The position numbers were made by a program, and so were the translations under genes. Shown here in pieces: positions 36,841 to 53,155 of a stretch of 64,000 nt of DNA (the stretch's first letter is position 1; each line of letters begins with the position of its first letter). The notes under the pieces are model-generated. The model was not told the origin of the DNA. It ran no database searches and saw only the letters and a program-made list of their open reading frames with translations. The DNA is taken from IMG/VR virus record IMGVR_UViG_3300042923_000569, positions 186,001 through 250,000 of that record; one strand, given 5' to 3'.

Positions 36841-36910
36841 GGGATAGCCTCTAAGCATTAAGTTTTTAAATTATAATATGCTAAACTTTAATTGTCTAGC
36901 ACATTTGAGA

Positions 36911-37300: not shown

Positions 37301-37323
37301 CCCCTTTATTAAGAATTTTGGAT

Positions 37324-37902: not shown

Positions 37903-38100
37903 CTCAATTAAAATGGTTAGGAACTATTCCTTAACCTTGAATACATTATACATTACTACGTTAAACTTGCAAGTACTTTCTAGTAGATAATCAGGTAAAT
38001 TATGAAGATAATTACTATCAGTACTTTTACCATTTTTTCCATCTGCATGGCTACTATATGTGCTAGGCTCTTAGTACTGTATAGTACTACATAACGTTTC

Positions 38101-38325: not shown

Positions 38326-38435
38326 TACCGTATTCCTTTATGTTGTGGTATGAAACTAATCTTAGTACAACTTATTAGTACTTGCAAGAATTATTTTAGT
38401 ACAATATATAACCTATAACTAACAAATATATCTAT

Positions 38436-38504
38436 GCACCCTATGGGTTAGTAGCGGTATCTGCCAATGAGATAAGTATAGCAAAAGGGGCTAACCTAAG
38501 TCAA
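38436..38504 (-). ncRNA. promoter-hairpin-CCCATAGGGTGC unit 4
   Basis: TTGACT-18-TATACT; motif at 38436-38447. Confidence 0.5.
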
Positions 38505-38518
38505 CCCCTTGTTTAAAA

Positions 38519-38860
38519 TTATTTGCAAGTATAGATAACTTTAGCGGGAACATACTTACCAGTACTTTCATCCGGGATCGCAGTTTCCATAGTATATTTG
38601 TTATGGATGCGGTCTGAAATGATCCGGCCTGTATCGTTTCGGTAATCGTTACCGTCTTTCCAGAATTCCAGGGCATGACCGTGACTAGTCAAAGTAACTT
38701 TTGGTTGAGTAAGTTCAATCGTTGAACCTACAGACATAGGAACATTACTTGCGACTGTGTTCCCATTAACGATCAGTGTTTGAGTACTACAGGTTAGTAC
38801 TTCAGCTTGAACGGACAGTGACAGTACTGATAAGATACCAAAGGCGATTAACTTTTTCAT
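38519..38860 (-). CDS. secreted/periplasmic protein
   Basis: MKKLIAFGILSVLSLSVQA signal peptide; one Cys pair. Confidence 0.7.
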   Translation of the reverse strand: MKKLIAFGILSVLSLSVQAEVLTCSTQTLIVNGNTVASNVPMSVGSTIELTQPKVTLTSHGHALEFWKDGNDYRNDTGRIISDRIHNKYTMETAIPDESTGKYVPAKVIYTCK

Positions 38861-38929
38861 TTTATAATCCTGTTCAGTTGATATAGTTATTATAATAAAA
38901 AAGGCTGACAAACGTCAACCTCTTTTTGA

Positions 38930-39454
38930 TTATTCTATAGTACTATTTAAAATTGCGTTCTGTATGTATTCCATAATTTCATATTGGTCTACATTGTCTT
39001 TTGATGTAATTTCTTGCATTGCACGATATGCCGCGAAGACGCCAGCTTTAAATTTAGCTGGTGGCACTGCTTTGAGAGAATTCACTATACTAGATAAGTA
39101 ACCTGGATTATTAGCAAAGATTCTCGCTAAGTCCTGGGTTAGAGCTTGTACTTTTGTTCTACTGTTATGTACTGGATCTTTCGGAGCTTCTTCTGGTTCA
39201 GCGGTAGGAGTTGAACCCGGCATAAGCCCTAATGATTTAAAGTACTTTAACTTTTCTTCAGGCTTCATTTTTGACGTATCGATACCCTGAGAAGGCATTG
39301 TGTTTAATTTGCCTTGCATTCCTGTACCCTGATTACGTTTACCTTTGCTACCTTGTCCGGCGTCGTGACTGTTTGCACTGCGTTCACTGTTCGACCACTT
39401 ATCAGAGTGTCCTGAAAGTGTTGCACCGTTTTTACTTCTGAATGTTCCAGGCAT
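38930..39454 (-). CDS. hypothetical protein
   Basis: start moved to MPGTFRS. Confidence 0.65.
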   Translation of the reverse strand: MPGTFRSKNGATLSGHSDKWSNSERSANSHDAGQGSKGKRNQGTGMQGKLNTMPSQGIDTSKMKPEEKLKYFKSLGLMPGSTPTAEPEEAPKDPVHNSRTKVQALTQDLARIFANNPGYLSSIVNSLKAVPPAKFKAGVFAAYRAMQEITSKDNVDQYEIMEYIQNAILNSTIE

Positions 39455-39511
39455 AATAAAAAATCCCCAATATGTTATAAAGTTTATTATAATCATATTT
39501 AGGGATTATGT

Positions 39512-39754
39512 CTACCGCCGTTCAACGAATTTGTTATACTGTTCATGCGTCATTAGGTTTAGTACTTCATCCCGGATCACAATGCGTTCATTGTGTGATA
39601 CGTCAAGTACTTTAAACAATCCACAACCTAACTTCCTGGCATGAATAGATCCGCTTTTGTATCCGGTCACAACCTTGATCGCTTTGTCAAGTATCTTTGT
39701 TTGTACTTTAAAGTGCAATCGAAGTTGTATATCTTGAATCATTATCCGCTTCAT
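39512..39754 (-). CDS. ParE/RelE-fold-like small protein
   Basis: ARKL...LDV....RI......LMTHEQYNK resembles stand-alone ParE-like phage proteins. Confidence 0.4.
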   Translation of the reverse strand: MKRIMIQDIQLRLHFKVQTKILDKAIKVVTGYKSGSIHARKLGCGLFKVLDVSHNERIVIRDEVLNLMTHEQYNKFVERR

Positions 39755-39798
39755 AGATACACCTTCTAAGGGGCTTGTCAAGCCCCCTACGATTGATT

Positions 39799-40263
39799 TT
39801 AAGCACTTTTCGCAATGGACTGAGCCAGACGGATAGGCACAAGTGAGCGGCGATACATGACGCGTACACGCTTATCATTAGGGGTAGTTAGTACTTGTTC
39901 ACCGATGATCCCTGCGATAATCTTACGTACTTCTTTCACTGCAACGTGAGCAACTTCTACAACTTTCTTTTCAAAGTTGTTTGCATTCAGGAAGGAAATA
40001 CGATCCTTAATTGCTGGTGCTGGTTTAGCAACATCAACAGCTTTAAGAGCGGCAGCCAGGCTTGCAGTAGTTTCTGAATGAATCTCTACTGAATGCTCTT
40101 TCGCTGGAATTGCTGGTGCAACTTCAACCGCTGCAACTACTTCAGACAGTACAGCCCAACGTTCACCGGCTGCTGCATCTTTACCAAAATCTTTGACTTT
40201 GCCGCCGTTCTCTGAAGCGAAGTTACGAGCCAGGGTGCGTGATGCGAAGAATTCAGTTCTCAT
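39799..40263 (-). CDS. hypothetical early protein
   Basis: FASRTLAR...GKVKDFG...GERW. Confidence 0.75.
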   Translation of the reverse strand: MRTEFFASRTLARNFASENGGKVKDFGKDAAAGERWAVLSEVVAAVEVAPAIPAKEHSVEIHSETTASLAAALKAVDVAKPAPAIKDRISFLNANNFEKKVVEVAHVAVKEVRKIIAGIIGEQVLTTPNDKRVRVMYRRSLVPIRLAQSIAKSA

Positions 40264-40338
40264 TTTTTCAATCTCTCTTGTGTGGTTGATGTGATAATTA
40301 TAAGTTCTTTCGGGTTTTAGTGCAAGTACTTTTTAAAT

Positions 40339-40671
40339 TTAATTTTTAATACATTCTACACTGTAATCGATTGTTGTATCATCAGTTGGTTTTACATAAA
40401 ACATCTTTTCTTCTTCCGTCTGGTATCCAGTAAGTGTCACTTTCATACCATCAAAATAAGAATCAGTTTTGATACGGTTTACTACTTCAGGCGATACTGT
40501 CAAGTTATAATTAACAGGATAGTAATCCTCTCTGGCACCACTTACTTTACAAACATAATTAGGATTAGTAAATGATTTAAATTTATTATATCCTTCTTTA
40601 AGTACTGGATGAATAACAAAACCACATACTGAGCTTACTAATACAATTGCAATCAAAGACGAAGTTTTCAT
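40339..40671 (-). CDS. membrane-anchored/secreted protein
   Basis: N-terminal hydrophobic segment. Confidence 0.65.
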   Translation of the reverse strand: MKTSSLIAIVLVSSVCGFVIHPVLKEGYNKFKSFTNPNYVCKVSGAREDYYPVNYNLTVSPEVVNRIKTDSYFDGMKVTLTGYQTEEEKMFYVKPTDDTTIDYSVECIKN

Positions 40672-40743
40672 TATTATATTCCAGTTCAGTTTATATTATA
40701 AAGTACTCTGATTATATAAAGTACTTTGACTAATATCCACTAA

Positions 40744-41190
40744 TTAAACGTAATTATATTTGCTAATATATGTTTTAACATTAGAAGATAATTCTTCCAA
40801 CATTACGCCAGCATCCTCACCTTTATAATTACAAAGTTGAACAAAGCGAATACCATTATCTAATAGATCTTCTGCGATTGAATACATAGCCTCAATTGCT
40901 GATCTATCTTCCATGTAATTACTTTCCATCATTTCCCGGCGTTCTTCTGGCGTCAGTGGGATATAAGTACCGGCAGCAATTGCCAATGATTCTGCAACAA
41001 CATCGCGGTACTCTCTGCGAATTTCCATTGTCATATGAGGATCATTCACTGACAGAGTATCACCCAAGGTAAAAGATTCTGCTGATTTGTAAACTGAAGA
41101 ATATACAGCTTCAGCTTCAGCCAGACAAGTTTCAATCCCGTAAGTACTTTCGATTGCTTGCAATGCTTCAGCCAGTTTCTTGAGTTGCAT
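40744..41190 (-). CDS. hypothetical acidic protein
   Basis: own promoter cassette upstream. Confidence 0.7.
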   Translation of the reverse strand: MQLKKLAEALQAIESTYGIETCLAEAEAVYSSVYKSAESFTLGDTLSVNDPHMTMEIRREYRDVVAESLAIAAGTYIPLTPEERREMMESNYMEDRSAIEAMYSIAEDLLDNGIRFVQLCNYKGEDAGVMLEELSSNVKTYISKYNYV

Positions 41191-41335
41191 TTTCTTATCC
41201 CCTGTACGATTCGCCGTGAACCGTTTCGATGTAGTAATAATAGTACTTCTGAATGTTTAATGCAAGTACTTTTTAAATCGAAAGTATAATTTTTGATGTA
41301 AAAAAAAAGCCTCGACAATGCGAGGCTTTTGTGGG

Positions 41336-42190
41336 TTACTTGAGACTTACAAACGGTACTGACGAACCTGGTACAAACTGAGTAGGTAACACACCGTTCC
41401 ATTTGTCAACCGCTGCAAGCTGTACAAGTTGCGGATTGTTGTTTAGTGCGTCTGCTTTCGCCTTAATCGCTGCTGCATCAGCTTCACCTTGTAGGCGAGT
41501 TGCCTGTGCGTCTGCTTTAGCTTGTGCAACTTTTGCATCGGCGGTGGCTTGTGCGTTAGTTACCTGGATCTGTGCGGTAACTTTCGATTCTTCCCACTGC
41601 TGCTGGCGTTTCGTTACGGCAATCTCTGCCTGCATACGTTCTTCAATCGACTTTTCATACGCTGGACTGAATGACAAGTTTTCGATCTGGACGCTTTCAA
41701 TTAGTACCGGATAGTTTTGCATAGCACCTTTAACCGCTAGGTTAAGATTGGTAACTAGCTTTTGACGATCCTGTACTGCTGTAATAGCATTGAATTGTCC
41801 GAAAACGTTTTCAAGTGCTTGCGGTACTTGACGATCAATAACACGTGCAACAAAGTTATCGATACTACCAAATTGGCTATACAGTTCACCAACTTTGCCC
41901 GGTGGAATAGAATACGAAACTGAAATATTCATATCTGCCGGTTGCTGGTCACGCGAATATGCCTGAGTTTTTGGATAAGATTTACTCTGACCAGAAACTT
42001 TAACTTCTACTACTGAATCAACAAATGGCTTTTTCCAGTGGAAGCCAGGATCGGCAATGCCAGTTAATTTACCATTAGTAAGAATAACGCCGCGATCTTG
42101 CTGGTCAACAGTATAGAACGAACCACCAGCAATCATCGCACCTACTAGTAGTACGAATACTACAAGACCAATACCAAAGTACTTACCCAT
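41336..42190 (-). CDS. SPFH/band 7/prohibitin family membrane protein
   Basis: N-terminal TM, YTVDQ..RGV, PGFHWK.PF, SRDQQ, coiled coil, KWNGVLP. Confidence 0.9.
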   Translation of the reverse strand: MGKYFGIGLVVFVLLVGAMIAGGSFYTVDQQDRGVILTNGKLTGIADPGFHWKKPFVDSVVEVKVSGQSKSYPKTQAYSRDQQPADMNISVSYSIPPGKVGELYSQFGSIDNFVARVIDRQVPQALENVFGQFNAITAVQDRQKLVTNLNLAVKGAMQNYPVLIESVQIENLSFSPAYEKSIEERMQAEIAVTKRQQQWEESKVTAQIQVTNAQATADAKVAQAKADAQATRLQGEADAAAIKAKADALNNNPQLVQLAAVDKWNGVLPTQFVPGSSVPFVSLK

Positions 42191-42200
42191 TGAAAACCTC

Positions 42201-42449
42201 TTAAGTTAATTTACCATTTTGATTATAAAGAAATAAAGGAATATCCTTCGAATTTAAATCTACTTTAAAACTACTATCACAATCACGTGCAAATGCAATT
42301 GCCCGATCATGAGTTAATGATTCTGCATCAGGAGTATTTGCCGCTTTATCAGCCTGAATAGTACAGCGAACATTTCCACCACAACGATCAAATAAATCGT
42401 TCTGTGTACTTCTGAATTTTTCAATTGCAGTAATTGGCTGTACTTTCAT
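42201..42449 (-). CDS. hypothetical protein
   Basis: 82-aa ORF. Confidence 0.6.
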   Translation of the reverse strand: MKVQPITAIEKFRSTQNDLFDRCGGNVRCTIQADKAANTPDAESLTHDRAIAFARDCDSSFKVDLNSKDIPLFLYNQNGKLT

Positions 42450-42451
42450 TT

Positions 42452-42688
42452 TTAATTATCCTTATACATAAGATAGATTAACAAACAAGTAAAACATTCC
42501 GCACACATGAAAATTAGAAATGTTCCAAAACCTTTTCCAAAAGTCATATATGTCATGAAATCTGAATTATGATTATACGCGATTGATTCGATTTGCCAAG
42601 TATAATCTACTGTAAAATTAGAATAGGTTAGCCCAAGTGCTAACAACAATAATGTTGCCAGTACCGCAATCCCCTTTACATATTGCAT
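42452..42688 (-). CDS. small membrane protein
   Basis: two TM segments. Confidence 0.6.
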   Translation of the reverse strand: MQYVKGIAVLATLLLLALGLTYSNFTVDYTWQIESIAYNHNSDFMTYMTFGKGFGTFLIFMCAECFTCLLIYLMYKDN

Positions 42689-42719
42689 ATTCTACCTGCT
42701 TTTGTCAGTGTGTCAACAG

Positions 42720-42998
42720 TTATTTTACTACTGCTTTCTTTGCCTGGTAACTGCGATAGACAGTTTCAGAAAGATCAACTAATATCAGGAACCCGGCAGG
42801 GAATAACCCCATAAAGGCAGTACTGAAAGAAGCAGGTAACACGAAATGAATAAACGCCTTCCAGCGATCACCACCTTCAATGTAATTGAACATTTCGTGA
42901 TTGCAGATCATCAGTACTAAACAAACGGTAATACTGAATACTACACCAAACAGATAAGAGTATCCAATCCACTTCAGGTATTTTGGTAATCGTTTCAT
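42720..42998 (-). CDS. small membrane protein
   Basis: two TM segments, basic tail. Confidence 0.65.
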   Translation of the reverse strand: MKRLPKYLKWIGYSYLFGVVFSITVCLVLMICNHEMFNYIEGGDRWKAFIHFVLPASFSTAFMGLFPAGFLILVDLSETVYRSYQAKKAVVK

Positions 42999-43110
42999 TT
43001 AAAAGTTCTCTACAAAAGTTGCCCTTTCAATGAGTGCATTCTACCAGAAATATCCTTATATGCAAGCACAATTTTAAATTAAAAATATAATGTTTATTTG
43101 CTCAACGGCA

Positions 43111-43190
43111 TTGACAGACCACCAGCAATAGGGCATAATTATCACATAGACAGCGAAATGTCTTATCCCATAGGGTGCGGAGTTGTACCT
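43111..43190 (+). ncRNA. promoter-hairpin-CCCATAGGGTGC unit 5 (Chi in spacer)
   Basis: TTGACA-17-CATAAT; AGACA-GCGAAA-TGTCT; motif at 43167-43178. Confidence 0.55.
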
Positions 43191-43249
43191 GTAATATATA
43201 AATTTAAAACAAAAATAAGTACTGGCTATTATACCAGTACTATGATATA

Positions 43250-43549
43250 CTATTTCCAGATATACTTGGTTACGCCGTAATATCCGCGATGCAGTACTAC
43301 CACATCATTACTTGTCATAACATGGCTTAGGGTAATGTCTACCAGTGTTTCGCCATTAAACAACGCCATCCAGCCATAACCAGTATCAACATATACATGA
43401 TGATCGCCATCGCTTTCAACTAATTGCCATTCAAACGGTTTACCGTTCTTATTCCACAATGCCAGATCTTCGCACGGTTCTGTTACCAGGCGATGCGGAA
43501 GATCGGACATATAATCAAAACGTTTTTCCAACTGTTCGATGATTGACAT
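43250..43549 (-). CDS. small early protein
   Basis: start moved to MSIIEQ after the AATTGAGAG leader. Confidence 0.65.
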   Translation of the reverse strand: MSIIEQLEKRFDYMSDLPHRLVTEPCEDLALWNKNGKPFEWQLVESDGDHHVYVDTGYGWMALFNGETLVDITLSHVMTSNDVVVLHRGYYGVTKYIWK

Positions 43550-43625
43550 ATGAATTCTCTCAATTAAAGTAACTACATTATAAAGTACTATCATAATAAT
43601 TACAATAGTACTTTTGATAATGTTT

Positions 43626-43832
43626 TTACGCGGCGTGATACTGCTTGCCTTTTTCTGGATGTTCGCCTGATTGTTTCCAACGACAGACTTCCTGCTCTGC
43701 TTCGTGACGTGTCGCCCAATCATTCACATAGTTGTCACAGAATCGAACAACAAAACGTTTTTTGCCTGAAATATCACCAGTGAATTCAGGAGTAATTGTA
43801 TAGCGGCGATCTTTAAAAGCCATGATAGTCAT
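43626..43832 (-). CDS. small early protein
   Basis: YTITPEFTG...RFVVRFC. Confidence 0.6.
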   Translation of the reverse strand: MTIMAFKDRRYTITPEFTGDISGKKRFVVRFCDNYVNDWATRHEAEQEVCRWKQSGEHPEKGKQYHAA

Positions 43833-43970
43833 CTCACTTAATAAGGTTAGTTAAGTATTCGAGTACATGCAACAATACAGGCTGTACTGAATCCCAATTA
43901 TAAAACATCAAAGCACAAACTACAATACCTAATAAGAATTGCATTTCGCTTTCTCCTACTCAGTAACTAC

Positions 43971-44003
43971 ATTATAAAGTACTCGCAGAATTAAGCAAGT
44001 ACT
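43971..44003 (-). promoter_or_regulatory. AGTACT-bracketed early promoter cassette (representative copy)
   Basis: TTGCTT-16-TATAAT with AGTACT at 43978 and 43998; near-copies at 45215, 46056, 46488, 46966, 47310, 48460, 48999. Confidence 0.75.
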
Positions 44004-44016
44004 TTTGATAATGTTT

Positions 44017-44256
44017 TTACTTAGAATATTCTAACAGTGCATCAGCGTCAATAAACCCGGTAACGCCATATTCAGAGAAATCAACAACAGGCGTTTGAAA
44101 CTGTGCCAGGTATGCAATCGACGTGTATTTGCCATAAGTCGCAGTGATATACTCCTGCAATTTGGCGTGAACATCAGTAGAGTTTTCGTCTTTGATAACT
44201 ACTGCGTACACATCAGGAAGGCCAACAGTCGGGGAAACTTTAACAATCTTCAACAT
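44017..44256 (-). CDS. small early protein
   Basis: AATTGAGAG leader. Confidence 0.65.
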   Translation of the reverse strand: MLKIVKVSPTVGLPDVYAVVIKDENSTDVHAKLQEYITATYGKYTSIAYLAQFQTPVVDFSEYGVTGFIDADALLEYSK

Positions 44257-44310
44257 AATGTTTTACTCTCTCAATTAAAATGATAACTTAATTATACAGT
44301 ACTATCTAAA

Positions 44311-44577
44311 TTATGCAAGCGATTTGCTATATTTTAAATGTACTTCTAATGCTTGGGACATACGATTACGCATTGCCTTTACAACCATTCGACGGCAAGA
44401 TAATTCTGTTTTATCATCCAGCTTAGATAATCCAGGCCGTTTCATTGAATACTTTTGCAGTACTCGCCAGTTGGCCCCGGTCTTGCTGTATATGCTGCAA
44501 GTGATACGATCATTCAAACAATCGAACAAAACAACTAACGTCCTGGTACTATACAACATAGAATAATTCTCAGACAT
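44311..44577 (-). CDS. small early protein
   Basis: AGGAGG RBS. Confidence 0.65.
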   Translation of the reverse strand: MSENYSMLYSTRTLVVLFDCLNDRITCSIYSKTGANWRVLQKYSMKRPGLSKLDDKTELSCRRMVVKAMRNRMSQALEVHLKYSKSLA

Positions 44578-44621
44578 TTTATAACCTCCTGTTATGGGGG
44601 ATAGTTAATCCCCCGGTGTGG

Positions 44622-44942
44622 TTAGTCGTCTGGAGTTTCTACATCATATGCGGGTTCAATTTTTTCCCCGGTGTGATCATCATAGAGATCATCATTTTCA
44701 TAATTCACTTCAACCCCGACGATATGCCATTGACTATCATCGGGATCATTAAAGTTAACTTTGTGATACTCATTGATAACAGTATCGATAGCCAGGCAAC
44801 CGCCATCAGCAGTTACAAAGTACTGGTACTTTTCATAACCGCCGGAATTGAAGCCCCAATTGATTGACGGCGTACCGTCATCCAATCTGATAGCCTGGCC
44901 GATGAATTCATTTTCGAAATTGCTTTGAGTATTCGATAACAT
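44622..44942 (-). CDS. small acidic early protein
   Basis: YFVTADGGCL...VNYE...LY pattern. Confidence 0.7.
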   Translation of the reverse strand: MLSNTQSNFENEFIGQAIRLDDGTPSINWGFNSGGYEKYQYFVTADGGCLAIDTVINEYHKVNFNDPDDSQWHIVGVEVNYENDDLYDDHTGEKIEPAYDVETPDD

Positions 44943-45250
44943 GGCTGTATTCCTATCTCGTTTAAAGTAACTACATTATAAAGTACTTGATGACATATTA
45001 CAAGTACTTTTAATGTTTACTGATCCCAATAATTCTGTAAAGATTGATATGTGATTTTATATTGATTAGCCGCTAACATTAACGCATCAGTTTCTGTTTT
45101 CCCTTCCTGTTGCATAAGATGCCAGGCATAATCACTAGCTAATTCATAATCGGATGAATCAAACGCTTCTTCTCTCATATGTTGTTCCTTTCGTTTAAAG
45201 TAACTACATTATAAAGTACTCGCGAATATATGCAAGTACTGTTAATGTTT

Positions 45251-45520
45251 TTACGCTAATAAATCTGCCAGGATGTTATCGCGTTTCATTACTTCTTTTA
45301 CATAATATCGATAATGAGTAACAGCGGCAATGTAAGTTTCAAAATCAAGGTATTCAGTTTTACCGGCGATCTGTGCTGTTACATAATAACCGATTTTAAT
45401 ATGTTCGCCGTGAAAATTAAAAGAATCTTTTTGAGTCAGTACTACAATATCCTTTTGAGTAGACAATCTAGCAACTTCAGTATCTTTTGAATCAAACTCG
45501 CAAGTATCTTTAAATGACAT
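45251..45520 (-). CDS. small early protein
   Basis: own promoter and GGAG RBS. Confidence 0.65.
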   Translation of the reverse strand: MSFKDTCEFDSKDTEVARLSTQKDIVVLTQKDSFNFHGEHIKIGYYVTAQIAGKTEYLDFETYIAAVTHYRYYVKEVMKRDNILADLLA

Positions 45521-45630
45521 TTTTCTTTCTCCGTCTCGTTTCGATATAAGTAAGTATACTCTCTTTTAGTTTATGTACAAGTACTTTTTAAATTAAAAGT
45601 ATAATTATATTTTTTAACGGGCACACTTCA

Positions 45631-45698
45631 GCACCCTAATGGGTTTGACCGTTTCGCCGGATTAAGATAAGTATACTAAAAGGGCTGACTTGCGTCAA
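45631..45698 (-). ncRNA. promoter-hairpin-motif unit 6 (variant CCCATTAGGGTGC)
   Basis: TTGACG-17-TATACT; CCG-GCGAAA-CGG. Confidence 0.5.
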
Positions 45699-45711
45699 CC
45701 CCTTTTTTCAA

Positions 45712-46011
45712 TTATTCTTCCATCTGTTGCTGATCATATACATCACCGCTAGCAATCCATAGCAGTTTAACATACAAATCAGTATCGGATTCATTTTCTA
45801 ATTCGTCATCATCCCATGCACCAGTTTCTAACAGTACTGATACAATCTTTTCGCGAGGTATCGCCTGCAATGTTTCCAGGAAGTAAGGAAGTTCTGCTTT
45901 AACAGATTCTTCACAGTCGCCTGCATGATGCATAGAATAGACCTGATCCAGATCTCTGAATGTAAACTCAATCTTACCACAAGATGACGTGTACCAGATT
46001 TGATCTTGCAT
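45712..46011 (-). CDS. small acidic early protein
   Basis: start moved to MQDQ; HAGDC, ETGAWDDDEL, LLWIA. Confidence 0.7.
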   Translation of the reverse strand: MQDQIWYTSSCGKIEFTFRDLDQVYSMHHAGDCEESVKAELPYFLETLQAIPREKIVSVLLETGAWDDDELENESDTDLYVKLLWIASGDVYDQQQMEE

Positions 46012-46094
46012 TTTGTTTTCTCTCAATTAAAAGTAAGTCAGTAACTACATTATAAAGTACTCGCAGTAATAAGCAAGTACTTTTGATAATGTTT

Positions 46095-46439
46095 TTACGA
46101 TTCGTCTGCCATACTATCCACCAGCTCATAAACCGGCTTAAGTAATGCATCAAACGCCGCATGATCACCGCTAGCAGTATTAGCGATTAAATCAATACCA
46201 TCATTGCCGTTATTATAGATAAGCAGTATAGAACCGATTTGATAAGGATCATCTTTCTTTAATACGCGGAGCCAGTCCAGTCCAGTACTGTTAAGGGCTT
46301 CTTTGATTGTGCTAACATCACTTGAACGGCGTAACACGAACTCCTCACCATCAAAAATGCTAACCTCATAGCCACCAGCAAAAACAGTACTCAAAATACA
46401 ATCAATGATTCTGTTTTCGTTTTCCAGGAGTGCAGCCAT
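46095..46439 (-). CDS. small early protein
   Basis: GYEVSIFDGEE...STGLD pattern. Confidence 0.7.
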   Translation of the reverse strand: MAALLENENRIIDCILSTVFAGGYEVSIFDGEEFVLRRSSDVSTIKEALNSTGLDWLRVLKKDDPYQIGSILLIYNNGNDGIDLIANTASGDHAAFDALLKPVYELVDSMADES

Positions 46440-46526
46440 AATATCCTCTCAATTAAAAGTAATTCGTTTGCAGTAACTACATTATAAAGTACTCGCTAGT
46501 TAATGCAAGTACTTTTGATAATGTTT

Positions 46527-46919
46527 TTACTTATTCAGATAACGATGAAAGTAATACATAGGGGAATGTTGGCGATCTTTCGCTGGCGGTACTTTGTACT
46601 TACAAAGCTCATAAACCTTTTGCATCATCTGGATATCAGACGCTGGCAATGCATAGTACTCAGTCTTTTTAACATCAATCGCGAAGTGTTGAAGTAGTAA
46701 AGCCCTGGCTGATTCAGCACTTAAGCCAGTGTGAAGAATAGCGGCTTTTTCTTCAAATGCTTTAAGCATTTGCTCGTTAGGCAAATTCTTACGTGGTAAC
46801 GCATTGATAGTTGCCTTATGGAATTTCTTACCATTGGCTAACAGCAATTCATGTACTGACATTTCTTTGCCATTGAACAAGAAACAAAAACCGTTTTCAT
46901 AACCTCTGACTTCTAACAT
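46527..46919 (-). CDS. small early protein
   Basis: AATTGAGAGG leader. Confidence 0.7.
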   Translation of the reverse strand: MLEVRGYENGFCFLFNGKEMSVHELLLANGKKFHKATINALPRKNLPNEQMLKAFEEKAAILHTGLSAESARALLLQHFAIDVKKTEYYALPASDIQMMQKVYELCKYKVPPAKDRQHSPMYYFHRYLNK

Positions 46920-46925
46920 AGTAAT

Positions 46926-47348
46926 CCTCTCAATTAAAATTAACTACTCAATAAGTTTATTATATAGTACTCGCTTGTTATTGCAAGTACTATCGAACTA
47001 CTTATTATGATTATCATTGTACAGGCGATCACATAATCGCCCATGATAAACCCGCCCATTCTTTAAACGTTTACCCAAAGGCATAAACCATTTAAGATGG
47101 AAACCAGTAAGAAAGATTATATCTTTCATTCGGAAACTTCTACAGTCCAGCCTTTATAGGCGTCGATGTAATTGATCCAGTCCTGGTCATTCCAACGGGC
47201 AGTAGTTACACCAGGAGCTTTAAACTTGTAATGTCCAGCTTTATATGCTTCCATCTTAGTCATGTATCACCTCTCAATTAAAATTAACTACTCAATAAGT
47301 TTATTATATAGTACTCGCTTGTTATTGCAAGTACTATCGAACTACTTA
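46926..47348. repeat. 79-bp perfect direct repeat of a promoter/RBS cassette (46926-47004 and 47270-47348)
   Basis: identical CCTCTCAATTAAAATT...AGTACTATCGAACTACTTA copies. Confidence 0.85.
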
Positions 47349-47747
47349 CAGATCTTTTTTACGCTTCACATCATTGCAGTTATCATAGTAAGGAATCGAT
47401 AACATATTACACAACGTGTACAGGGTACGCACACGAACATTGTCAAAATCAACAAAGTTCCCCTGTACTGCTTCGCGGAAAATAGTATAACCAGTGTATT
47501 CATACTGATTACCATGCCCAGGCATAAACTCATTGCGAACTACATCGATCCAGACCTGTTCACCTTCAGGCCGGTTATAGTGGTTAGCGTTTAACTCGTT
47601 TGCCTTTTCCACATCAACCAGGCAGGCGACATAAGTACTGTGATACGTTACGCCTAATGAATCAGTCCAGCGATTACCAGTAAGAGTAATGCCCTTGATA
47701 TCTTCCAGGGTTAAACGTGCGATTGTGATTCTAGTATCTTTGTCCAT
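47346..47747 (-). CDS. small early protein
   Basis: RW.D..G.TYHS...G.QYEYT...V.RKKDL pattern. Confidence 0.7.
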   Translation of the reverse strand: MDKDTRITIARLTLEDIKGITLTGNRWTDSLGVTYHSTYVACLVDVEKANELNANHYNRPEGEQVWIDVVRNEFMPGHGNQYEYTGYTIFREAVQGNFVDFDNVRVRTLYTLCNMLSIPYYDNCNDVKRKKDL

Positions 47748-47874
47748 CTGGTAAACCTCTCAGTTAAAATTGTGTATCTCGTTTCGATATAAAAGATTAT
47801 ACGCGATTCTAGTTTATGTGCAAGTACTTTTTAAAATGAATTTATAATTATATTTTTTTAATGGGTATAACTCT

Positions 47875-47942
47875 GTACCCTATGGGCTAAGCCATTTCTC
47901 TGGCGTATGAGTACTATAACAAAAGAGGCTAACTTTCGTCAA
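47875..47942 (-). ncRNA. promoter-hairpin-motif unit 7 (CCCATAGGGTAC)
   Basis: TTGACG-18-TATAGT; GCCA-GAGAAA-TGGC. Confidence 0.5.
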
Positions 47943-47959
47943 CCCCTTTTGATAATTAA

Positions 47960-48415
47960 TTATAGATACTTTTCAGGGATAGAATCTTGCTGAATGATTT
48001 GCTTTTCAGCCGCGAGTTCTGTTACAAACTCTTTCAGCTTTTTAAAGTACTTGTCATAACCCGCGATTACTTTATCAGCATCGCCTTTAATCTTGCGTAC
48101 TGCAATCTTGCGGCTTTCAGCGTACATATGCGGCTTTTCAGTAATGCAAGTTACCCAGGCACCGTCAAATTCAACTTCCAGATCCTGGAGTTCAACTTCT
48201 GAATCATTAAACTTGATTCCTTTGTGAATGTATGACCGGAAAGTTACTGGATCATTCATTCTGATTTTTGCGGAAACATCATTAATGTCGCCAATCAAAC
48301 CGCAGAAGATAGCAATACCGCCACCTAGTGCTAGTGGGCTGATTCGAATACTTCCATTAGGAAAGTACTTCAGAAATGATTCTGTTACTGCTGCCTGGAG
48401 TTCGTTGGCTTTCAT
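47960..48415 (-). CDS. hypothetical early protein
   Basis: start moved to MKANE. Confidence 0.7.
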   Translation of the reverse strand: MKANELQAAVTESFLKYFPNGSIRISPLALGGGIAIFCGLIGDINDVSAKIRMNDPVTFRSYIHKGIKFNDSEVELQDLEVEFDGAWVTCITEKPHMYAESRKIAVRKIKGDADKVIAGYDKYFKKLKEFVTELAAEKQIIQQDSIPEKYL

Positions 48416-48497
48416 GTTCTGTTCTCTCAATTAAAAAGTTACTATATAACTAATTATAAAGTACTCGCTAGTTAATGCAAGTACTTTTGATAATTAA

Positions 48498-48941
48498 TTA
48501 TTCAACAGTTCCCGCCAGGATCTCTCCTACGCGTACCATTTCATAACGATCAACGATTGATAAAGATAGCTTAGTATCTTTTTGGCGTACACTATACCAG
48601 GTATCACCTTCAAACACATAACGGGTAATGTTTTTGTTTGCGATAAGGAACATCAACCATGATTTAGTAGTTAGTGGCTCTGTGCCAGTTTCACCACGAT
48701 CACGCCCATAAGCTACAGTATAGCCAGGAACCTTTTTATTGAAGCTGTGACCTTCTGGACACTCGATAGATTTATCCAGTACTGACAGATCACCCAGGGC
48801 GATTAGTGCCTTTGCACGTTCTGCATCGTTGTAATGCTCAACTAACATTCTACCAGTGTGACCGATATAGCCATCATAGTTTACAGATGACCAGGTAACA
48901 TGTTCGCCGTCTTTGATTGCAATAACTGCTGGAGTACCCAT
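48498..48941 (-). CDS. conserved phage early protein
   Basis: MGT...YDGY..HTG..L..HY...LI.LGDLSVL...YGRDRGE. Confidence 0.75.
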   Translation of the reverse strand: MGTPAVIAIKDGEHVTWSSVNYDGYIGHTGRMLVEHYNDAERAKALIALGDLSVLDKSIECPEGHSFNKKVPGYTVAYGRDRGETGTEPLTTKSWLMFLIANKNITRYVFEGDTWYSVRQKDTKLSLSIVDRYEMVRVGEILAGTVE

Positions 48942-49097
48942 TTTTAAATCCTCTCAATTAAAAGTAACATCGTCTCGTTTCGATATAGGTAATTATATAG
49001 TACTGGTAATCGAAAGCAAGTACTTTTTAAAATAAAAGTATAATTAAGAATCAAAAATAAATTTGCATCTAAAGAAAAATGATGATACGATGTTTAT

Positions 49098-49192
49098 GCG
49101 GCGAAAATGTGAGGTTCGCCGCAAGTCCAACGAATGATAACGCATTGTATTACTTTATAGGATAGCTATGGGTTTGCTATCCTTTTTTTTTT
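49098..49192 (+). ncRNA. candidate ~95-nt small RNA
   Basis: TTGCAT-17-TACGAT (extended -10) promoter; 8-bp 5' hairpin; unpaired core; AGGATAGC/GCTATCCT terminator plus a long T run; no ORF. Confidence 0.6.
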
Positions 49193-49207
49193 ATTTTCGA
49201 AAAGGTA

Positions 49208-49282
49208 TTGACTCCACCAGCCAAATAACCGATAATCACATCAAGACGGCGAAACGTCCTTTCCCATAGGGTGCGGAGCTAT
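49208..49282 (+). ncRNA. promoter-hairpin-CCCATAGGGTGC unit 8 (Chi in spacer)
   Basis: TTGACT-17-GATAAT; GACG-GCGAAA-CGTC; motif at 49263-49274. Confidence 0.55.
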
Positions 49283-49319
49283 GTCTTTAAAGTACTAATT
49301 TTCTTACGGGTATTCCTCT

Positions 49320-49387
49320 GCACCCTATGGGCTACGCCTTTGTCTCGGCTTGTATGTATTATTGCATTTTTCGGGGATTGAAGTCAA
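49320..49387 (-). ncRNA. promoter-hairpin-CCCATAGGGTGC unit 9
   Basis: TTGACT-18-AATAAT; GCC-GAGACAAA-GGC; motif at 49320-49331. Confidence 0.5.
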
Positions 49388-49405
49388 CCCCCGATTTGTA
49401 AAGAT

Positions 49406-49762
49406 TTATTCTTCTTGCGTTACACATTCCAGGCGGTAAGTACTGAAATGTTTACGGAATAAATCGCAAGCCTGATCGCCGTTTTCCGCTTGCATTATAA
49501 TCGAACCTTCTCGATTATTTTTAATATCGAAATATGTTACTATCCAGCCACGCGTTTTGATTTCAGATAGTGGCAAGTGAATTGATCCACCGCTGGTTAA
49601 TTGACCTTCAGGATCTTTGTTGATTGCTTCCTGGTCGATAGTCAGTGAATAGTTTTCACCATCTACAACGTGGAACAATTCAACAATCGGATCGATGTTT
49701 CCACGTTTGTTTGCGATGCGTTCCAGTGTAGAAAGTACTCCGCGAAGTTCTGATAATCTCAT
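49406..49762 (-). CDS. small early protein
   Basis: 118-aa ORF. Confidence 0.7.
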   Translation of the reverse strand: MRLSELRGVLSTLERIANKRGNIDPIVELFHVVDGENYSLTIDQEAINKDPEGQLTSGGSIHLPLSEIKTRGWIVTYFDIKNNREGSIIMQAENGDQACDLFRKHFSTYRLECVTQEE

Positions 49763-49801
49763 TTAAAATTTACTCTCGTTTGTTGGTGTGTGGTAATAGT
49801 A

Positions 49802-50203
49802 CTATACTACTTCAGAAGTAGCAAGAATATTTTCAAAGTATTCGATTAAATCACAAAGTAACTTGTAGCGAAGTTTACCAGGTTCAGAATCCATTACGCA
49901 AAGGTTACGCTGATTCCAATGTAAGTTAACAGCCCGATTAACATCATTATCAGTTAATTGCATTTCAACCGGATAACCGCAGTGTAAACCCATTTCCACA
50001 AATACAGGCTGCAAGTATTCGTGATCGATCCCGGTAACTTCACTGTTAGGAGTGTGGGCGAATACGTGCCAGCAGATACCATGCTGTCTGGTTAGGTTGA
50101 ATGATTCACCGTTGATAGTGGTGTAAGTAACATCACGATCTAAACAGTCTTTCATTGCTGTTAGTACTTTCAGGACTAAAACTGCCTGCTCTGTACGTTT
50201 CAT
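49802..50203 (-). CDS. small early protein
   Basis: start moved to MKRTEQ; GIC...YPV...R..L pattern. Confidence 0.7.
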   Translation of the reverse strand: MKRTEQAVLVLKVLTAMKDCLDRDVTYTTINGESFNLTRQHGICWHVFAHTPNSEVTGIDHEYLQPVFVEMGLHCGYPVEMQLTDNDVNRAVNLHWNQRNLCVMDSEPGKLRYKLLCDLIEYFENILATSEVV

Positions 50204-50337
50204 TGTATTGCCTCTCAATTAAAATTTGTTTTGTTTCGATACAGGGAAGTTTACACTACTCGAAAGTTTATACAAGTACTTTTATAAAATATTTTTAAAC
50301 TCTCTGTAACGCATTCTAAGCGATTTAAAGTACTGCC

Positions 50338-50619
50338 TTACACCTTCAACGATTGAACGTTAAAAGCCCCGCTAATAGGCTTACACGCAAGATCTATAGC
50401 ATAGTTCGCTTTCTTGTGGATTATGTACATACACGAATCAAACTGATGATTATACGGCATATCATAAACCCGGCGTTGTACAAGTTCACCACTAACAACA
50501 AAGGCCAGGTAGCCGCTGAAGGTACAACTACGCGGGCCAGCACTGGTCATCGTTTTAGCAATACGGGTACGGGGATCAATCAGGGACGAAATAGGCTTAA
50601 GGTTAAGATTGTTATTCAT
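50338..50619 (-). CDS. small early protein
   Basis: start moved to MNNNL. Confidence 0.6.
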   Translation of the reverse strand: MNNNLNLKPISSLIDPRTRIAKTMTSAGPRSCTFSGYLAFVVSGELVQRRVYDMPYNHQFDSCMYIIHKKANYAIDLACKPISGAFNVQSLKV

Positions 50620-50766
50620 GGCGTTTAGTCTCAATTAAAAGGTAGAATCTAAAACGCTCTGTAATCAATTCTAAGCGTTTCTAATAGTACTTTAAGCGAA
50701 TGTATCACAGTACTATTAGAAATGCTTAGCGGGGCATATAGCCCCGCCATGCTGTATTACTTTGTA

Positions 50767-51411
50767 TTACGCGGCGGTATCTTCAGAGGCTACGCGGAAA
50801 GTTTCGATGAAAGTTTCGCGGTCCATGTTTTTAGAAGCTACCAGATCTTTGAGTTCCTGGCTCATGTTGCCTTTTTCCGGCATATCGTACTGTTTGCCAT
50901 CGACTTCAACAGTGACGCGGTTGTATGCGTTGTTGCTGCCGGTAAGTGACGCTTTGATCTTCTTACCTACACCAGCAACCGCCGCCTGAGCTACTGCCAG
51001 ATCCACGCCACCAGCTACCAGAAGTTTGAGCATTTTTTCACGTTCTTCTTTCGCTTTCTCTTCCGCTTCAGCGTTCAGACGTTCACGTTCTGCCTGAGCT
51101 TTAACGCGGGCTTCTTCGCGGGCCGCTTCAGCACGTGCGGCTTCTTCTTTCTGGTACTGTACAGCAGCCGGGATTGCTTTAGACGCTGCAACCAGAATTT
51201 TAGAAATCACGTCAGTGTCAGTTGTTTTATCAACAAAGTACTGAGCCAGGTTAGTCGCAACAGTGTTTACGTGATCAGCAATGTCTGCTTTGTGCTGAGC
51301 CAGTACTTCTTTACTGTGTGTCTTACCTTCTTCCGGTGCCGCCAGGGTAGGAGCCTGAGCGAACAGGATTGAATTCAGTGTTACTTTAGGAGCTTTAGAA
51401 GTGTTAGTCAT
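50767..51411 (-). CDS. Ala/Glu/Lys-rich coiled-coil protein with a small C-terminal domain
   Basis: 214 aa; codon use suggests high expression; first gene of the leftward early region. Confidence 0.8.
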   Translation of the reverse strand: MTNTSKAPKVTLNSILFAQAPTLAAPEEGKTHSKEVLAQHKADIADHVNTVATNLAQYFVDKTTDTDVISKILVAASKAIPAAVQYQKEEAARAEAAREEARVKAQAERERLNAEAEEKAKEEREKMLKLLVAGGVDLAVAQAAVAGVGKKIKASLTGSNNAYNRVTVEVDGKQYDMPEKGNMSQELKDLVASKNMDRETFIETFRVASEDTAA

Positions 51412-51670
51412 GATATTACCCTCGAATTTTTTAAGTTAATTTGTTTGGCCTGATTGTTTCGGCTTGATTAAAATTTAAACTACTTGTTTCTTTCAGTCAA
51501 CTACTATTTTCAACTTTCAAGAAACTTTTTTTCTTTCTATCGTCTGGAGCATTTCGCCCTTTCGATAACCAACATCTTACACCATCCTTTCTAACTAGCA
51601 AGTACTTTTTAAAAACTTTTTTTCGTTCTATCCAAAAGAGAGTTTCTATCTTCAGGACTTGCTAGCCAGG

Positions 51671-51683
51671 TTGTTAAAGAGCG
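51671..51683 (-). promoter_or_regulatory. boxA antitermination element
   Basis: CGCTCTTTAACAA on the minus strand, ~20 nt past a TTGCAG-16-TACTAT promoter. Confidence 0.65.
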
Positions 51684-51941
51684 GTGTTCCGTGTTGATGT
51701 GGTAATAGTACACTAACCATAAAACTCTGCAAGCACTTTCTTATAAAAACTTATAACTTTTTTCATTCGTCGTTTTTCTTCCTTTATACGCGTAAAGAAA
51801 CCCACAACACATAGGAAGCATTTACAGCCCTTTAAAGTACTAATCTAAGTGTTTACCAGGCGTAATCCTCCAGCCTCTTATAGTGCGTCCTATGCGTTCC
51901 TATATAGAAGAAACTATTTTCAATCTTTTTAAAGAAAATGC

Positions 51942-52012
51942 TTGCTTCTCTGATTCAGTACTGTATAATCTTTTATATCGAAGCGAAATTCGTTATCCCA
52001 TAGGGTGCGGAG
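51942..52012 (+). ncRNA. promoter-hairpin-CCCATAGGGTGC unit 10
   Basis: TTGCTT-16-TATAAT; CGAA-GCGAAA-TTCG; motif at 51997-52008. Confidence 0.55.
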
Positions 52013-52045
52013 ATCCGTCTATTGCTTTTTTACTTTTTCCTGGGT

Positions 52046-52121
52046 ATAGCTCCGCACCCTATGGGAAAGGCCATTTCGCTGGCTTGTACGTATTATTGCA
52101 TAATTCGATCAGTACTGTCAA
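52046..52121 (-). ncRNA. promoter-hairpin-CCCATAGGGTGC unit 11
   Basis: TTGACA-18-AATAAT; GCCA-GCGAAA-TGGC; motif at 52054-52065. Confidence 0.55.
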
Positions 52122-52267
52122 CAAAAAAGAAAATTAAAATAATGCTTGATCTGGCTGGTGGCTGTGATATTATTACCCCGTCAACACGAAAAGACAGCTA
52201 TTGATTCTGCCTGGTACTAACCAGACGCGGAAGGGGAACTAATGGAAAAACGCAATGAAAAAGCGTT

Positions 52268-52395
52268 TAGCCATCTAAACGTCTAGAGTGCTAGCCACCT
52301 AGATGGATAGCCATTTAGCCGTCTAAACGTCTAGACATATAACCATCCAGAAGTACAGCCATCTTTCCATCTACACTGCCAGAAGTCTATCCGTC
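52268..52395. repeat. 16 x 8-bp degenerate tandem array, consensus TAG(C/A)C(A/G)TC
   Basis: tagccatc taaacgtc tagagtgc tagccacc tagatgga tagccatt tagccgtc taaacgtc tagacata taaccatc ... tatccgtc, in unbroken phase. Confidence 0.8.
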
Positions 52396-53075
52396 TGTTG
52401 ATAGCAGATAGGGATAGTACACCCAAAATTTAAGTAAAGTACAACATCGATCTATCCATAATTCTTTGACTAGGATCATTACATCCTGAAATATACAATA
52501 CAAAAAATAATAGCACTTAGGATAGTTCCTGGTACTGTAAACATCTACAGCAGGAATTATATTAAGTGCTATCAACGTACTTCTAATGTATATTCTCAGT
52601 ACTAAAGATTCCTGAGAAAGCAGGGTGTCCAGTCAAGACAACTTCGTTACAACGTTACGAGGGGAATCTCGTATAGTACTGTTACAGTCGGGATTCACCT
52701 TCCTGGTTACTCTCTTCCGCAACATGGATATATCTTACCATATCTAATTTGCACGTCAAGTACTTTATTTTTAATTTCCCACATTCTAGTATTCCCTGGG
52801 ACTGTTGTTTTGTCCAGTGATATCACGCTTCGGTTATAAAATTTACACAACGTTCGAAGTACTTTAAATTTAAGAATATCCTGAAACTTTTTTGTACTTT
52901 TGATGATCCAGGAAAAATCTGATAGGTACTCCAAATTTTTTAGGATTCGTCTTTTTTCTAACGCACCAACCAAGTTTTTCCCATACCTCATTGTACCTTT
53001 TTTAAAAAAGGTCATTTGTACAAAATGTGCTATTTACATTCGACTTCAGGAAGAGATATAGCGGCAGGGGGTAAC

Positions 53076-53155
53076 AGTACTGTTATGATGTTCTTAGTAC
53101 TGTTACCATACTCTTAGTACTGTTATGATGTTCTTAGTACTATATCATTACTATT
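53076..53155. repeat. 4 x 20-bp tandem repeat, each unit starting with AGTACT
   Basis: AGTACT at 53076, 53096, 53116, 53136; units 1 and 3 identical. Confidence 0.85.

Follow-up and report, generated by a model that had tools for sequence, protein, structure and literature searches.

Related systems

Early promoters of the sigma70 type have been described for phages CBB and GAP32 as 'RpoD-like' promoters with UP-like elements (PMC5259590). They belong to the same phage group as the genome analyzed here, are likewise clustered upstream of short hypothetical early genes partly inside the terminal repeat, and share a canonical TATAAT -10, but AGTACT is not mentioned in promoters in that paper or its supplements. 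In phage T5, a long non-permuted terminal repeat carries a pre-early region with many strong early promoters in front of small host-takeover genes, followed by an A1-dependent shut-off. Mycobacteriophage L5 carries 'stoperators', in which one operator-like word is dispersed through the genome, both in and outside promoters; these are 13-bp, asymmetric, orientation-dependent repressor sites that number about 30 in a temperate phage. Abundant genome-coating viral DNA-binding proteins such as phi29 p6 and SPO1 TF1 bind along the whole genome and also switch early promoters, with p6 reading DNA bendability and TF1 preferring hydroxymethyluracil DNA, and neither is known to use a discrete 6-bp palindrome. 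Chi and DNA uptake sequences are short words kept at high density by selection on density rather than on exact position, and they mark 'own' DNA; Chi is asymmetric and read by RecBCD, while uptake sequences are read by competence machinery. Finally, the binding site of the enterobacterial nucleoid-occlusion factor SlmA, GTGAGTACTCAC, is a 12-bp palindrome with AGTACT as its central 6 bp (PMC3020112).

We examined a 64,000-nucleotide stretch (the window) of a 358-kb jumbo phage genome, here called G000, together with the whole genome and those of its relatives. The palindrome AGTACT is present about 1,000 times in this virulent-type phage and in each of its enterobacterial relatives, and it is built into predicted early promoters at two fixed positions. 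The two positions, and the division of these promoters into an AGTACT-bearing class (class B) and a plain TTGACA class, are described here. The predicted terminal repeat is inferred to be of the T5 type by homology to the relative XbC2, for which PhageTerm called this type, although T5 promoters are not known to contain a genome-wide palindromic word, and the shut-off proposed below is inferred.

AGTACT at two fixed positions in predicted promoters

The original prediction listed pairs of AGTACT bracketing early promoters, mostly 20 bp apart, together with a tandem array of the same period, and every coordinate it gave is correct. Within the window the relevant features are as follows.
43971..44003 (-): class-B promoter core, with AGTACT fused to the -35 (TTGCTT), a 16-bp spacer and a second AGTACT 1 nt before TATAAT; sites at 43978 and 43998.
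44975..45008 (-): class-B promoter with a 17-bp spacer; sites at 44982 and 45003, 21 bp apart.
45208..45240 (-): class-B promoter; sites at 45215 and 45235.
46049..46081 (-): class-B promoter; sites at 46056 and 46076.
46481..46513 (-): class-B promoter; sites at 46488 and 46508.
46959..46991 (-): class-B promoter; sites at 46966 and 46986; core promoter identical to that at 47303-47335.
47303..47335 (-): class-B promoter; sites at 47310 and 47330; duplicate of the preceding core promoter.
48453..48485 (-): class-B promoter; sites at 48460 and 48480.
48992..49024 (-): class-B promoter; sites at 48999 and 49019.
43577..43612 (-): class-B variant; sites 23 bp apart (43584, 43607), with a degenerate -35.
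47796..47828 (-): class-B promoter with only the -35-fused AGTACT (47823).
41237..41270 (-): class-B variant; upstream AGTACT at 41265, the second at 41242 overlapping the -10 (TATTAT); the same design occurs at 37141-37174, where the 23-bp pair starts at 37146.
40297..40330 (-): class-B promoter with the upstream AGTACT only (40325); further single-site members at 37945-37977, 34300-34333 and 45553-45585.
53076..53141 (strand not assigned): tandem array of four AGTACT at a 20-bp period (53076, 53096, 53116 and 53136), with units that otherwise diverge.
53042..53075 (strand not assigned): conserved terminus word; the predicted physical genome end, which is the outer terminal-repeat boundary, falls between 53058 and 53059.
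33160..53058 (strand not assigned): predicted ~19.9-kb direct terminal repeat, holding all 16 class-B promoters and 101 AGTACT (5.1 per kb).
50680..50722 (strand not assigned): inverted repeat with about 21-bp arms and an AGTACT at each inner end, 23 bp apart (50686, 50709).
50338..50619 (-): conserved 93-aa early protein.

Read on the minus strand, where the genes lie, one site of a pair overlaps the -35 hexamer by one base (AGTAC|TTGCNN) and the other ends 1 nt before TATAAT. Sixteen predicted sigma70-like promoters carry AGTACT fused to a weak -35, and ten of them also carry it 1 nt upstream of TATAAT. These promoters fit the sequence criteria for the sigma70 type, as the -10 is TATAAT in 13 of 16, spacers are 16-17 bp, and the distance to the ATG is 29-50 nt. 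The -35 is weak, however, matching the consensus at 3-4 of 6 positions; TTGCAT and TTGCTT match at 3 of 6 and fail the scanner's threshold, and only 4 of the family pass the consensus scanner. In an alignment of the 16 promoters, AGTACTTG is the only invariant block.

A distance of 20 bp is found for 11 pairs, against about 1 expected in the window and 2.7 in the whole genome, and these 11 are the only such pairs in the 358-kb genome. They are not independent events, as eight sit in paralogous promoter cassettes, two of which have identical core promoters, and three sit in one tandem array. A genome-wide examination of AGTACT spacing, which had been proposed as a test of the idea, shows no 20-bp preference outside these.

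The original prediction read the pairs as sites for cooperative, same-face binding about two helical turns apart by a phage protein that could shut off early promoters, with the array as a nucleation site, and this reading is only partly supported. The 20-bp distance follows from the 16-bp promoter spacer and becomes 21 bp with a 17-bp spacer, the spacing is 23 bp in three variants, each site is anchored to its own hexamer, and in 121Q each site mostly occurs alone, so that cooperative two-turn binding is not required. What is supported is that AGTACT is a strongly selected word and that its two promoter positions recur at 1-nt precision in five whole genomes of different genera while the surrounding spacer sequence diverges. 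Promoter-level function is therefore likely, and a binding factor that occludes RNA polymerase is a reasonable model.

It is possible that the pattern is simply a by-product of an abundant word and of recent duplication of one cassette, as six of the paired promoters share long flanks and local AGTACT density is 5 per kb. This is unlikely, and is already largely refuted by the positional peaks across genera. AGTACT offsets relative to the -10 peak sharply at -27/-28 and -7 in five whole genomes and not in MIJ3 or T4, with counts of 7-15 at offset -7 and 5-11 at -27/-28 in four of the five genomes (2 and 5 in Kaldavass), against about 0.3-0.5 expected per offset.

A second alternative is that the AGTACT blocks are cis elements of a special promoter class read directly by RNA polymerase, carrying either host sigma70 or the phage's own sigma70-family factor. 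The upstream block would act as an UP-proximal or extended -35 element that compensates for the weak -35, and the downstream block as a spacer or extended -10 element. Consistent with this, AGTACTTG is invariant and is preceded by an A-tract, as in UP elements, and the genome encodes a sigma70-family protein (G000:261344-262180) that is conserved in all four AGTACT-rich genomes tested and absent from MIJ3 and T4. However, this alternative does not explain about 970 non-promoter copies under synonymous-site selection, the downstream site also occurs with perfect TTGACA boxes in 121Q and RaK2, and sigma70 spacer contacts are not known to read a 6-bp palindrome. We regard it as doubtful. A MotA/AsiA explanation also found no support. 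T4 MotA-dependent middle promoters have a MotA box about 12 bp from the -10; here no AsiA or MotCF Pfam match was found in the genome, although the control genomes could not give a signal for these families, and the TGC core lies 21 nt from the -10 and not 18-20 as in T4.

A genome-wide word shared by related jumbo phages

AGTACT itself occurs 257 times in the window against 20.8 +/- 5 expected, which the original prediction did not report. In the whole genome it is the most over-represented hexamer, with 991 copies, 9 times expectation, and it is specific among NGTACN words. It is not a promoter-specific operator, as only 2-3% of the copies lie in promoters and the rest are scattered through coding DNA; 852 of 991 lie in ORFs, in all three frames. 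Selection acts at synonymous sites, as 428 of 773 Ser-Thr dipeptides are written AGT-ACT against 118 expected, and Tyr TAC use is 84% in the motif context against 27% elsewhere. Orthologous sites are conserved at about twice the background rate (43% vs 19.6% with Kaldavass and 19% vs 10.6% with 121Q), yet most sites turn over while density is kept.

The excess is 9-12 times in seven related jumbo phages, GAP32, XbC2, Kaldavass, pEa_SNUABM_12, 121Q, A4 and RaK2. It is absent from T4 (0.9x), MIJ3 (0.2x), XacN1 (0 copies) and PX29 (0 copies). E. coli K-12 is depleted, with only 400 copies in 4.64 Mb; the phage word (about 2.8 sites per kb) is roughly 30 times denser than in the E. coli chromosome (about 0.09 per kb).

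Candidate readers of the word

No binding protein was identified. The neighboring XRE helix-turn-helix protein is missing from 121Q, RaK2 and pEa_SNUABM_12, and twenty clade-specific proteins encoded in the window show no DNA-binding Pfam domain. The 93-aa early protein at 50338..50619 is gene 2-3 from the left genome end in Eneladusvirus records, and it is present in all four AGTACT-rich genomes tested and absent from MIJ3 and T4. It could not be folded with confidence and is a speculative candidate only.

Host SlmA is very unlikely to be the reader, although all hosts of the AGTACT-rich phages are Enterobacterales apart from one record that names Xanthomonas. SlmA strongly requires G and T at positions 1 and 2 and a purine at position 3, flanking AGTACT on both sides (PMC3020112), whereas relaxed SlmA sites number 0, 0, 0, 1 and 0 in the five genomes, the GTR flank occurs at or below chance (11-23 against 26-33 expected), and G at -1 is 2.5 times depleted. 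Apart from avoidance of G at -1 and C at +1, the flanks carry almost no information, which fits a compact symmetric reading head.

A flank-independent 6-bp palindrome is also typical of restriction-modification specificity, and the genome encodes one C5-cytosine methyltransferase and one PF05869 Dam-family enzyme, raising the possibility that promoter activity depends on modification of AGTACT by a phage enzyme. This too found no support and is very unlikely. Nanopore comparison of native and amplified DNA from the relatives Kaldavass (1,114 AGTACT) and Hallingskeid found modification only at GATC, CCWGG and TGCAT, and reported no nicks (PMC11780129). In G000 the motif is enriched rather than avoided, no single-mismatch neighbor of AGTACT is strongly depleted (lowest 0.55x), giving no sign of repair-driven bias, and no PF01555 or PF02086 enzyme is present.

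The array beside the predicted genome end

Tandem Repeats Finder describes the array at 53076..53141 as period 20, 3.3 copies, 82% matches. It starts 17 bp outside the predicted terminal-repeat boundary, which is the likely terminase cut site, and it is not simply a nucleation site for promoters. The repeat is predicted from its colinearity with the PhageTerm-defined 17,581-bp repeat of XbC2 and from shared record starts, as the PhageTerm-oriented XbC2 record and the pEa_SNUABM_12 record begin at exactly the terminus word; its boundaries are thus inferred by homology, and the contigs of this genome bridge the junction and give no information on ends. The outer flanks of the predicted repeat are inverted TAGCGG / TAGCGA. 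The first AGTACT lies 16-18 nt from the predicted cut in G000, GAP32, XbC2 and Kaldavass, and a ~98.7%-identical strain has a fifth 20-nt unit that keeps AGTACT and the period.

These observations raise the possibility that the array, and possibly the word, serves genome-end recognition or packaging independently of promoter control, with the 20-bp repeats as putative sites for the small terminase subunit or an end-processing factor. We consider this doubtful, as regular 20-bp phasing is absent from XbC2 and Kaldavass and only partial in GAP32, and the inner boundary of XbC2 has no AGTACT.

A model for AGTACT function

We tentatively propose that AGTACT is a clade-specific signature word of enterobacterial RaK2/121Q/GAP32-like jumbo phages, and that it is most likely the recognition hexamer of an unidentified two-fold-symmetric, sequence-specific factor, probably phage-encoded. 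In this view, because the word is built into promoters of the ~20-kb terminal repeat, which is probably the first DNA to enter the cell, factor occupancy would be coupled to RNA polymerase binding, most simply by occlusion, which would shut these early promoters off once the factor accumulates. The array would be a high-occupancy cluster of the same word marking the genome end. Our analysis establishes selection on the word, its distribution across the clade, the two fixed promoter positions, and the location of the array next to a boundary that is itself predicted by homology; that a reader exists, what it is, whether it represses or activates, and the transcription start and sigma dependence of the promoters are inferred from sequence alone. 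No RNA runs hold this DNA, and no expression data exist for any member of the clade. A plain 6-bp site is short for a repressor, and 1,000 sites would titrate any low-abundance regulator. Furthermore, in 121Q the upstream site goes mostly with weak TTGC-type -35 boxes, which fits an activating or polymerase-recognition role as well as repression.

A more speculative and doubtful extension is that AGTACT is a 'self-identity' word, which an unknown phage factor would read to tell phage DNA from host DNA. The same reader would be wired into the terminal-repeat promoters and the genome end, linking early-gene timing, genome marking and end recognition. If true, this would be a new type of genome-wide cis-signal in phages that works without DNA modification.

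Other features of the window and genomes

An iteron-type replication origin has three or more direct repeats at about two helical turns, next to an AT-rich stretch and an initiator gene. Here the four repeats at 20 bp are followed by AT-rich DNA, and no initiator gene was identified. The phasing is not conserved in XbC2 or Kaldavass, and GC skew flips nearby, but transcription direction also flips there. These phages also carry 18-34 Chi sites against about 1 expected. The inverted repeat at 50680..50722 lies upstream of a conserved early gene and is conserved in Kaldavass.

Spacing and placement of the AGTACT pairs

The paired AGTACT sites that prompted this analysis are real, and every coordinate given for them in the original prediction is correct. 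The pairs are as follows.

43978/43998, 45215/45235, 46056/46076, 46488/46508, 46966/46986, 47310/47330, 48460/48480 and 48999/49019: two AGTACT, 20 bp apart
44982: two AGTACT, 21 bp apart
37146, 41242 and 43584: two AGTACT, 23 bp apart
53076, 53096, 53116 and 53136: four AGTACT in a tandem array

Tandem Repeats Finder reports a 20-bp period for the array, with 3.3 copies and 82% matches. A distance of 20 bp is held by 11 pairs, against about 1 expected in the window and 2.7 in the genome, and these are the only such pairs in the whole genome. They amount to two independent events rather than eleven, however, as they comprise one family of paralogous promoters and one tandem array.

The window covers bases 186001-250000 of a 357,873-bp virus record with a G+C content of 35.8%. 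A megablast search of the region against GenBank phages found nothing, and relatives were instead reached through protein searches, which place the genome among the RaK2-like jumbo phages of Enterobacterales. Its DNA ligase is 82% identical to that of Cronobacter phage GAP32, and other relatives are XbC2, Kaldavass, pEa_SNUABM_12, 121Q and A4. Related DNA occurs in soil, phyllosphere, plant, food and insect-gut metagenomes.

AGTACT is over-represented throughout the genome

The window holds 257 copies of AGTACT against 20.8 +/- 5 expected, and the genome holds 991, which is 9 times expectation and makes it the top hexamer. The excess belongs to the hexamer itself, as among NGTACN words AGTACT has 991 copies and the others have 0-237. 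Of these copies, 852 lie in open reading frames, in all three phases, and the coding and non-coding densities are 2.7 and 3.6 per kb. Gaps between sites are close to Poisson, though slightly more even, and because short gaps follow the Poisson expectation we rejected a hairpin or terminator role for close AGTACT pairs. A repair-driven bias was also rejected, as no single-mismatch neighbour of AGTACT is strongly depleted.

Selection acts at the DNA level. Of 773 Ser-Thr dipeptides, 428 are written AGT-ACT against 118 expected, and Ser-Thr itself is 1.5 times over-used while Thr-Ser is not. Additionally, Tyr is encoded by TAC in 84% of xAG-TAY-Txx contexts against 27% elsewhere. The flanks carry almost no information, except that G at -1 and C at +1 are avoided.

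The excess is specific to one clade

AGTACT was counted in eleven other phage genomes, with enrichment expressed relative to expectation or, for three genomes, shown beside the count of the same-composition control word TCATGA.

AGTACT copies in related and other phage genomes
XbC2: 1,105 copies; control word TCATGA, 186
Kaldavass: 1,114 copies; 9.5x
A4: 922 copies; control word, 146
pEa_SNUABM_12: 1,078 copies; 10.9x
121Q: 903 copies; 9.0x
GAP32: 1,011 copies; control word, 169
RaK2: 937 copies; 11.9x
T4: 28 copies; 0.9x
MIJ3: 20 copies; 0.2x
XacN1: 0 copies; absent
PX29: 0 copies; absent

The complete absence of AGTACT from XacN1 (AP018399) and PX29 (GU396103), in which the same-composition control word occurs 127 and 153 times, is the opposite extreme to the RaK2-like clade. 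E. coli K-12 has 400 copies in 4.64 Mb, so the phage is about 30 times denser than its host. In orthologous genes 43% of sites are shared with Kaldavass, against 19.6% for all hexamers, and with 121Q the figures are 19% and 10.6%. Sites are therefore protected, but most turn over while density is kept.

Two classes of sigma70-like promoter

The genome has two kinds of sigma70-like promoter, both recognized from sequence. Class A is plain TTGACA/T-N17-TATAAT without AGTACT, and about 45 of these are spread over 220-350 kb. Class B forms a cluster of 16 on the minus strand between window 34.3 and 49.0 kb, in front of small proteins with no Pfam family. In the alignment of the 16 class-B promoters the only invariant block is AGTACTTG, which is AGTACT sharing its last T with a weak -35 (TTGCAT, TTGCTT or TTGCAA), while the -10 is nearly invariant. 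Ten of the 16 have a second AGTACT that ends 1 nt before TATAAT. A consensus promoter scanner passes only four of the family, because most -35 boxes match 3 of 6. The unexplained TGCAT modification reported for Kaldavass (PMC11780129) overlaps the TTGCAT -35 box used by several of these class-B promoters.

In the leaders of the promoters at 48999, 47823, 45580, 41242 and 37146, a conserved block, TATATCGAAACGAGA, lies between the -10 and the ribosome-binding site, and it resembles the TGAAACG motif that the CBB and GAP32 papers interpret as a divergent -35. A further arrangement recurs several times, as at window 63110 and at 258887 and 260260 of the whole genome (G000), where plain TTGACT promoters are fused to terminator-like hairpins with the -35 inside the stem-loop and a T-run in the spacer.

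The two AGTACT sites are 20 bp apart with a 16-bp spacer and 21 bp apart with a 17-bp spacer, and each site is therefore tied to its own hexamer. In 121Q the two positions are used separately, with seven promoters having only the -35-fused site and twelve to thirteen TTGACA promoters having only the site next to the -10. A profile of AGTACT positions relative to the -10 shows sharp peaks at -27/-28 and -7 in G000, Kaldavass, 121Q, RaK2 and pEa_SNUABM_12, and no peaks in MIJ3 or T4. Spacer sequences differ between genera, so the positions are selected rather than inherited by chance, whereas the 20-bp figure itself is a consequence of promoter geometry. The proposal that the spacing reflects cooperative, same-face binding by a phage protein that could shut off early promoters is thus supported only in part.

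The AGTACT array and the predicted genome end

The XbC2 authors determined genome ends with PhageTerm, found a non-permuted terminal repeat of 17,581 bp of T5 type, and reoriented the record to start with it (PMC11273794). XbC2 position 1 is the reverse complement of window 53042-53058, and the pEa_SNUABM_12 record starts at the same word. XbC2 1-17,610 is colinear with window 53,058 back to 33,132. The features inferred from this homology, together with others nearby, are as follows.

33160-53058: predicted direct terminal repeat of about 19.9 kb, holding all 16 class-B promoters and 101 AGTACT (5.1 per kb)
33159|33160: predicted inner boundary of the repeat
53058|53059: predicted outer boundary of the repeat
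50680-50722: inverted repeat with arms of about 21 bp and an AGTACT at each inner end, conserved in Kaldavass
50338-50619: gene for a conserved 93-aa early protein
52266-52373: 48-bp tandem repeat, 2.2 copies, in the gene-free block
39512-39754 (-): ORF with a ParE-like toxin domain, inside the predicted terminal repeat

The two outer flanks of the predicted repeat are inverted TAGCGG / TAGCGA. The sequencing data consisted of assembled contigs only, with no ends and no RNA, and a two-fold depth step in one run (X4) is compatible with a terminal repeat but is not evidence for one. The array begins 17 bp outside the predicted boundary. In GAP32, XbC2 and Kaldavass the first AGTACT also lies 16-18 nt from the same point, but the copies that follow are irregularly spaced. 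A ~98.7%-identical strain in an insect-gut metagenome has one more 20-nt unit, which keeps AGTACT and the period. A separate role for the array in packaging is a possible but doubtful reading, and it would not exclude the main model described below.

No Rfam family or tRNA match was found in the gene-free block, which argues against a non-coding RNA there. In 121Q and A4 the corresponding region holds few ORFs over about 6 kb and carries 7-9 AGTACT per kb.

Candidate readers of AGTACT

Modification or nicking of AGTACT is unlikely, as a published Nanopore comparison of native and amplified DNA of the relatives Kaldavass and Hallingskeid found only GATC, CCWGG and TGCAT (PMC11780129). The genome itself encodes only one C5-cytosine methyltransferase (G000:313979-314818) and one PF05869 Dam-family methyltransferase (window 20850-21398, minus strand), the latter conserved across the clade. 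The binding site of SlmA has AGTACT at its centre (PMC3020112), but the flanks that SlmA requires are absent from the phage sites. A search of the genome for MotA and AsiA by Pfam match gave no hits.

The phage sigma70-family protein is clade-specific, which keeps direct recognition of the word by polymerase alive as a rival explanation, although we consider it unlikely. An XRE helix-turn-helix protein encoded next to the phage sigma gene was rejected as the reader because it is not clade-wide. A weak TetR_C hit in the 214-aa protein at 50767-51411 was also rejected, as it is below threshold and in the wrong part of the protein, has no PDB match, and the protein is not conserved in 121Q or RaK2. 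A comparative filter for clade-specific proteins leaves 100 candidates, and none of the 20 encoded in the window has a DNA-binding Pfam domain. The conserved 93-aa early protein sits behind the AGTACT-bearing inverted repeat, which lies just after a terminator hairpin and upstream of its gene. However, its AlphaFold model was too poor to be used in a search (pLDDT 55), and the ESM Atlas gave nothing.

We tentatively take AGTACT to be the recognition word of an unidentified symmetric factor that marks phage DNA, and this factor would be wired into terminal-repeat promoters at two occluding positions and into the genome end. The excess of the word, its clade distribution and its two promoter positions are results of the sequence analysis, whereas the existence of the factor, its binding and its effect on these promoters are inferred, and the genome end is predicted by homology to XbC2.

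RaK2, 121Q, GAP32, CBB and their relatives, whose transcription programme is unmapped, are among the best-known jumbo phages of Enterobacterales, and some are considered for biocontrol. A palindrome enriched 9-12 times that shapes codon and even dipeptide usage implies a major DNA-reading activity that has not been recognized, and our literature searches found no paper that links AGTACT to these phages. The excess is absent from sister lineages, and the word sits at two exact promoter positions and beside the predicted genome end. It offers a direct route to a bait sequence for finding the factor, to a definition of the early promoter classes, and to a test of how an unmodified phage genome might be told apart from host DNA.

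Other words with unusual frequency

Chi (GCTGGTGG) occurs 14 + 19 times in G000 against about 0.7 expected per strand. It is similarly enriched in Kaldavass, 121Q, RaK2 and pEa_SNUABM_12 but not in MIJ3 or T4, which suggests selection for protection from RecBCD. Conversely, several words are absent or nearly so from G000, with 0 copies of GGTACC, 0 of CGTACG, 1 of CCCGGG and 2 of TGGCCA, and GATGTC/GACATC and CCCAGT/ACTGGG are 30-100 times depleted, a pattern that looks like restriction avoidance.
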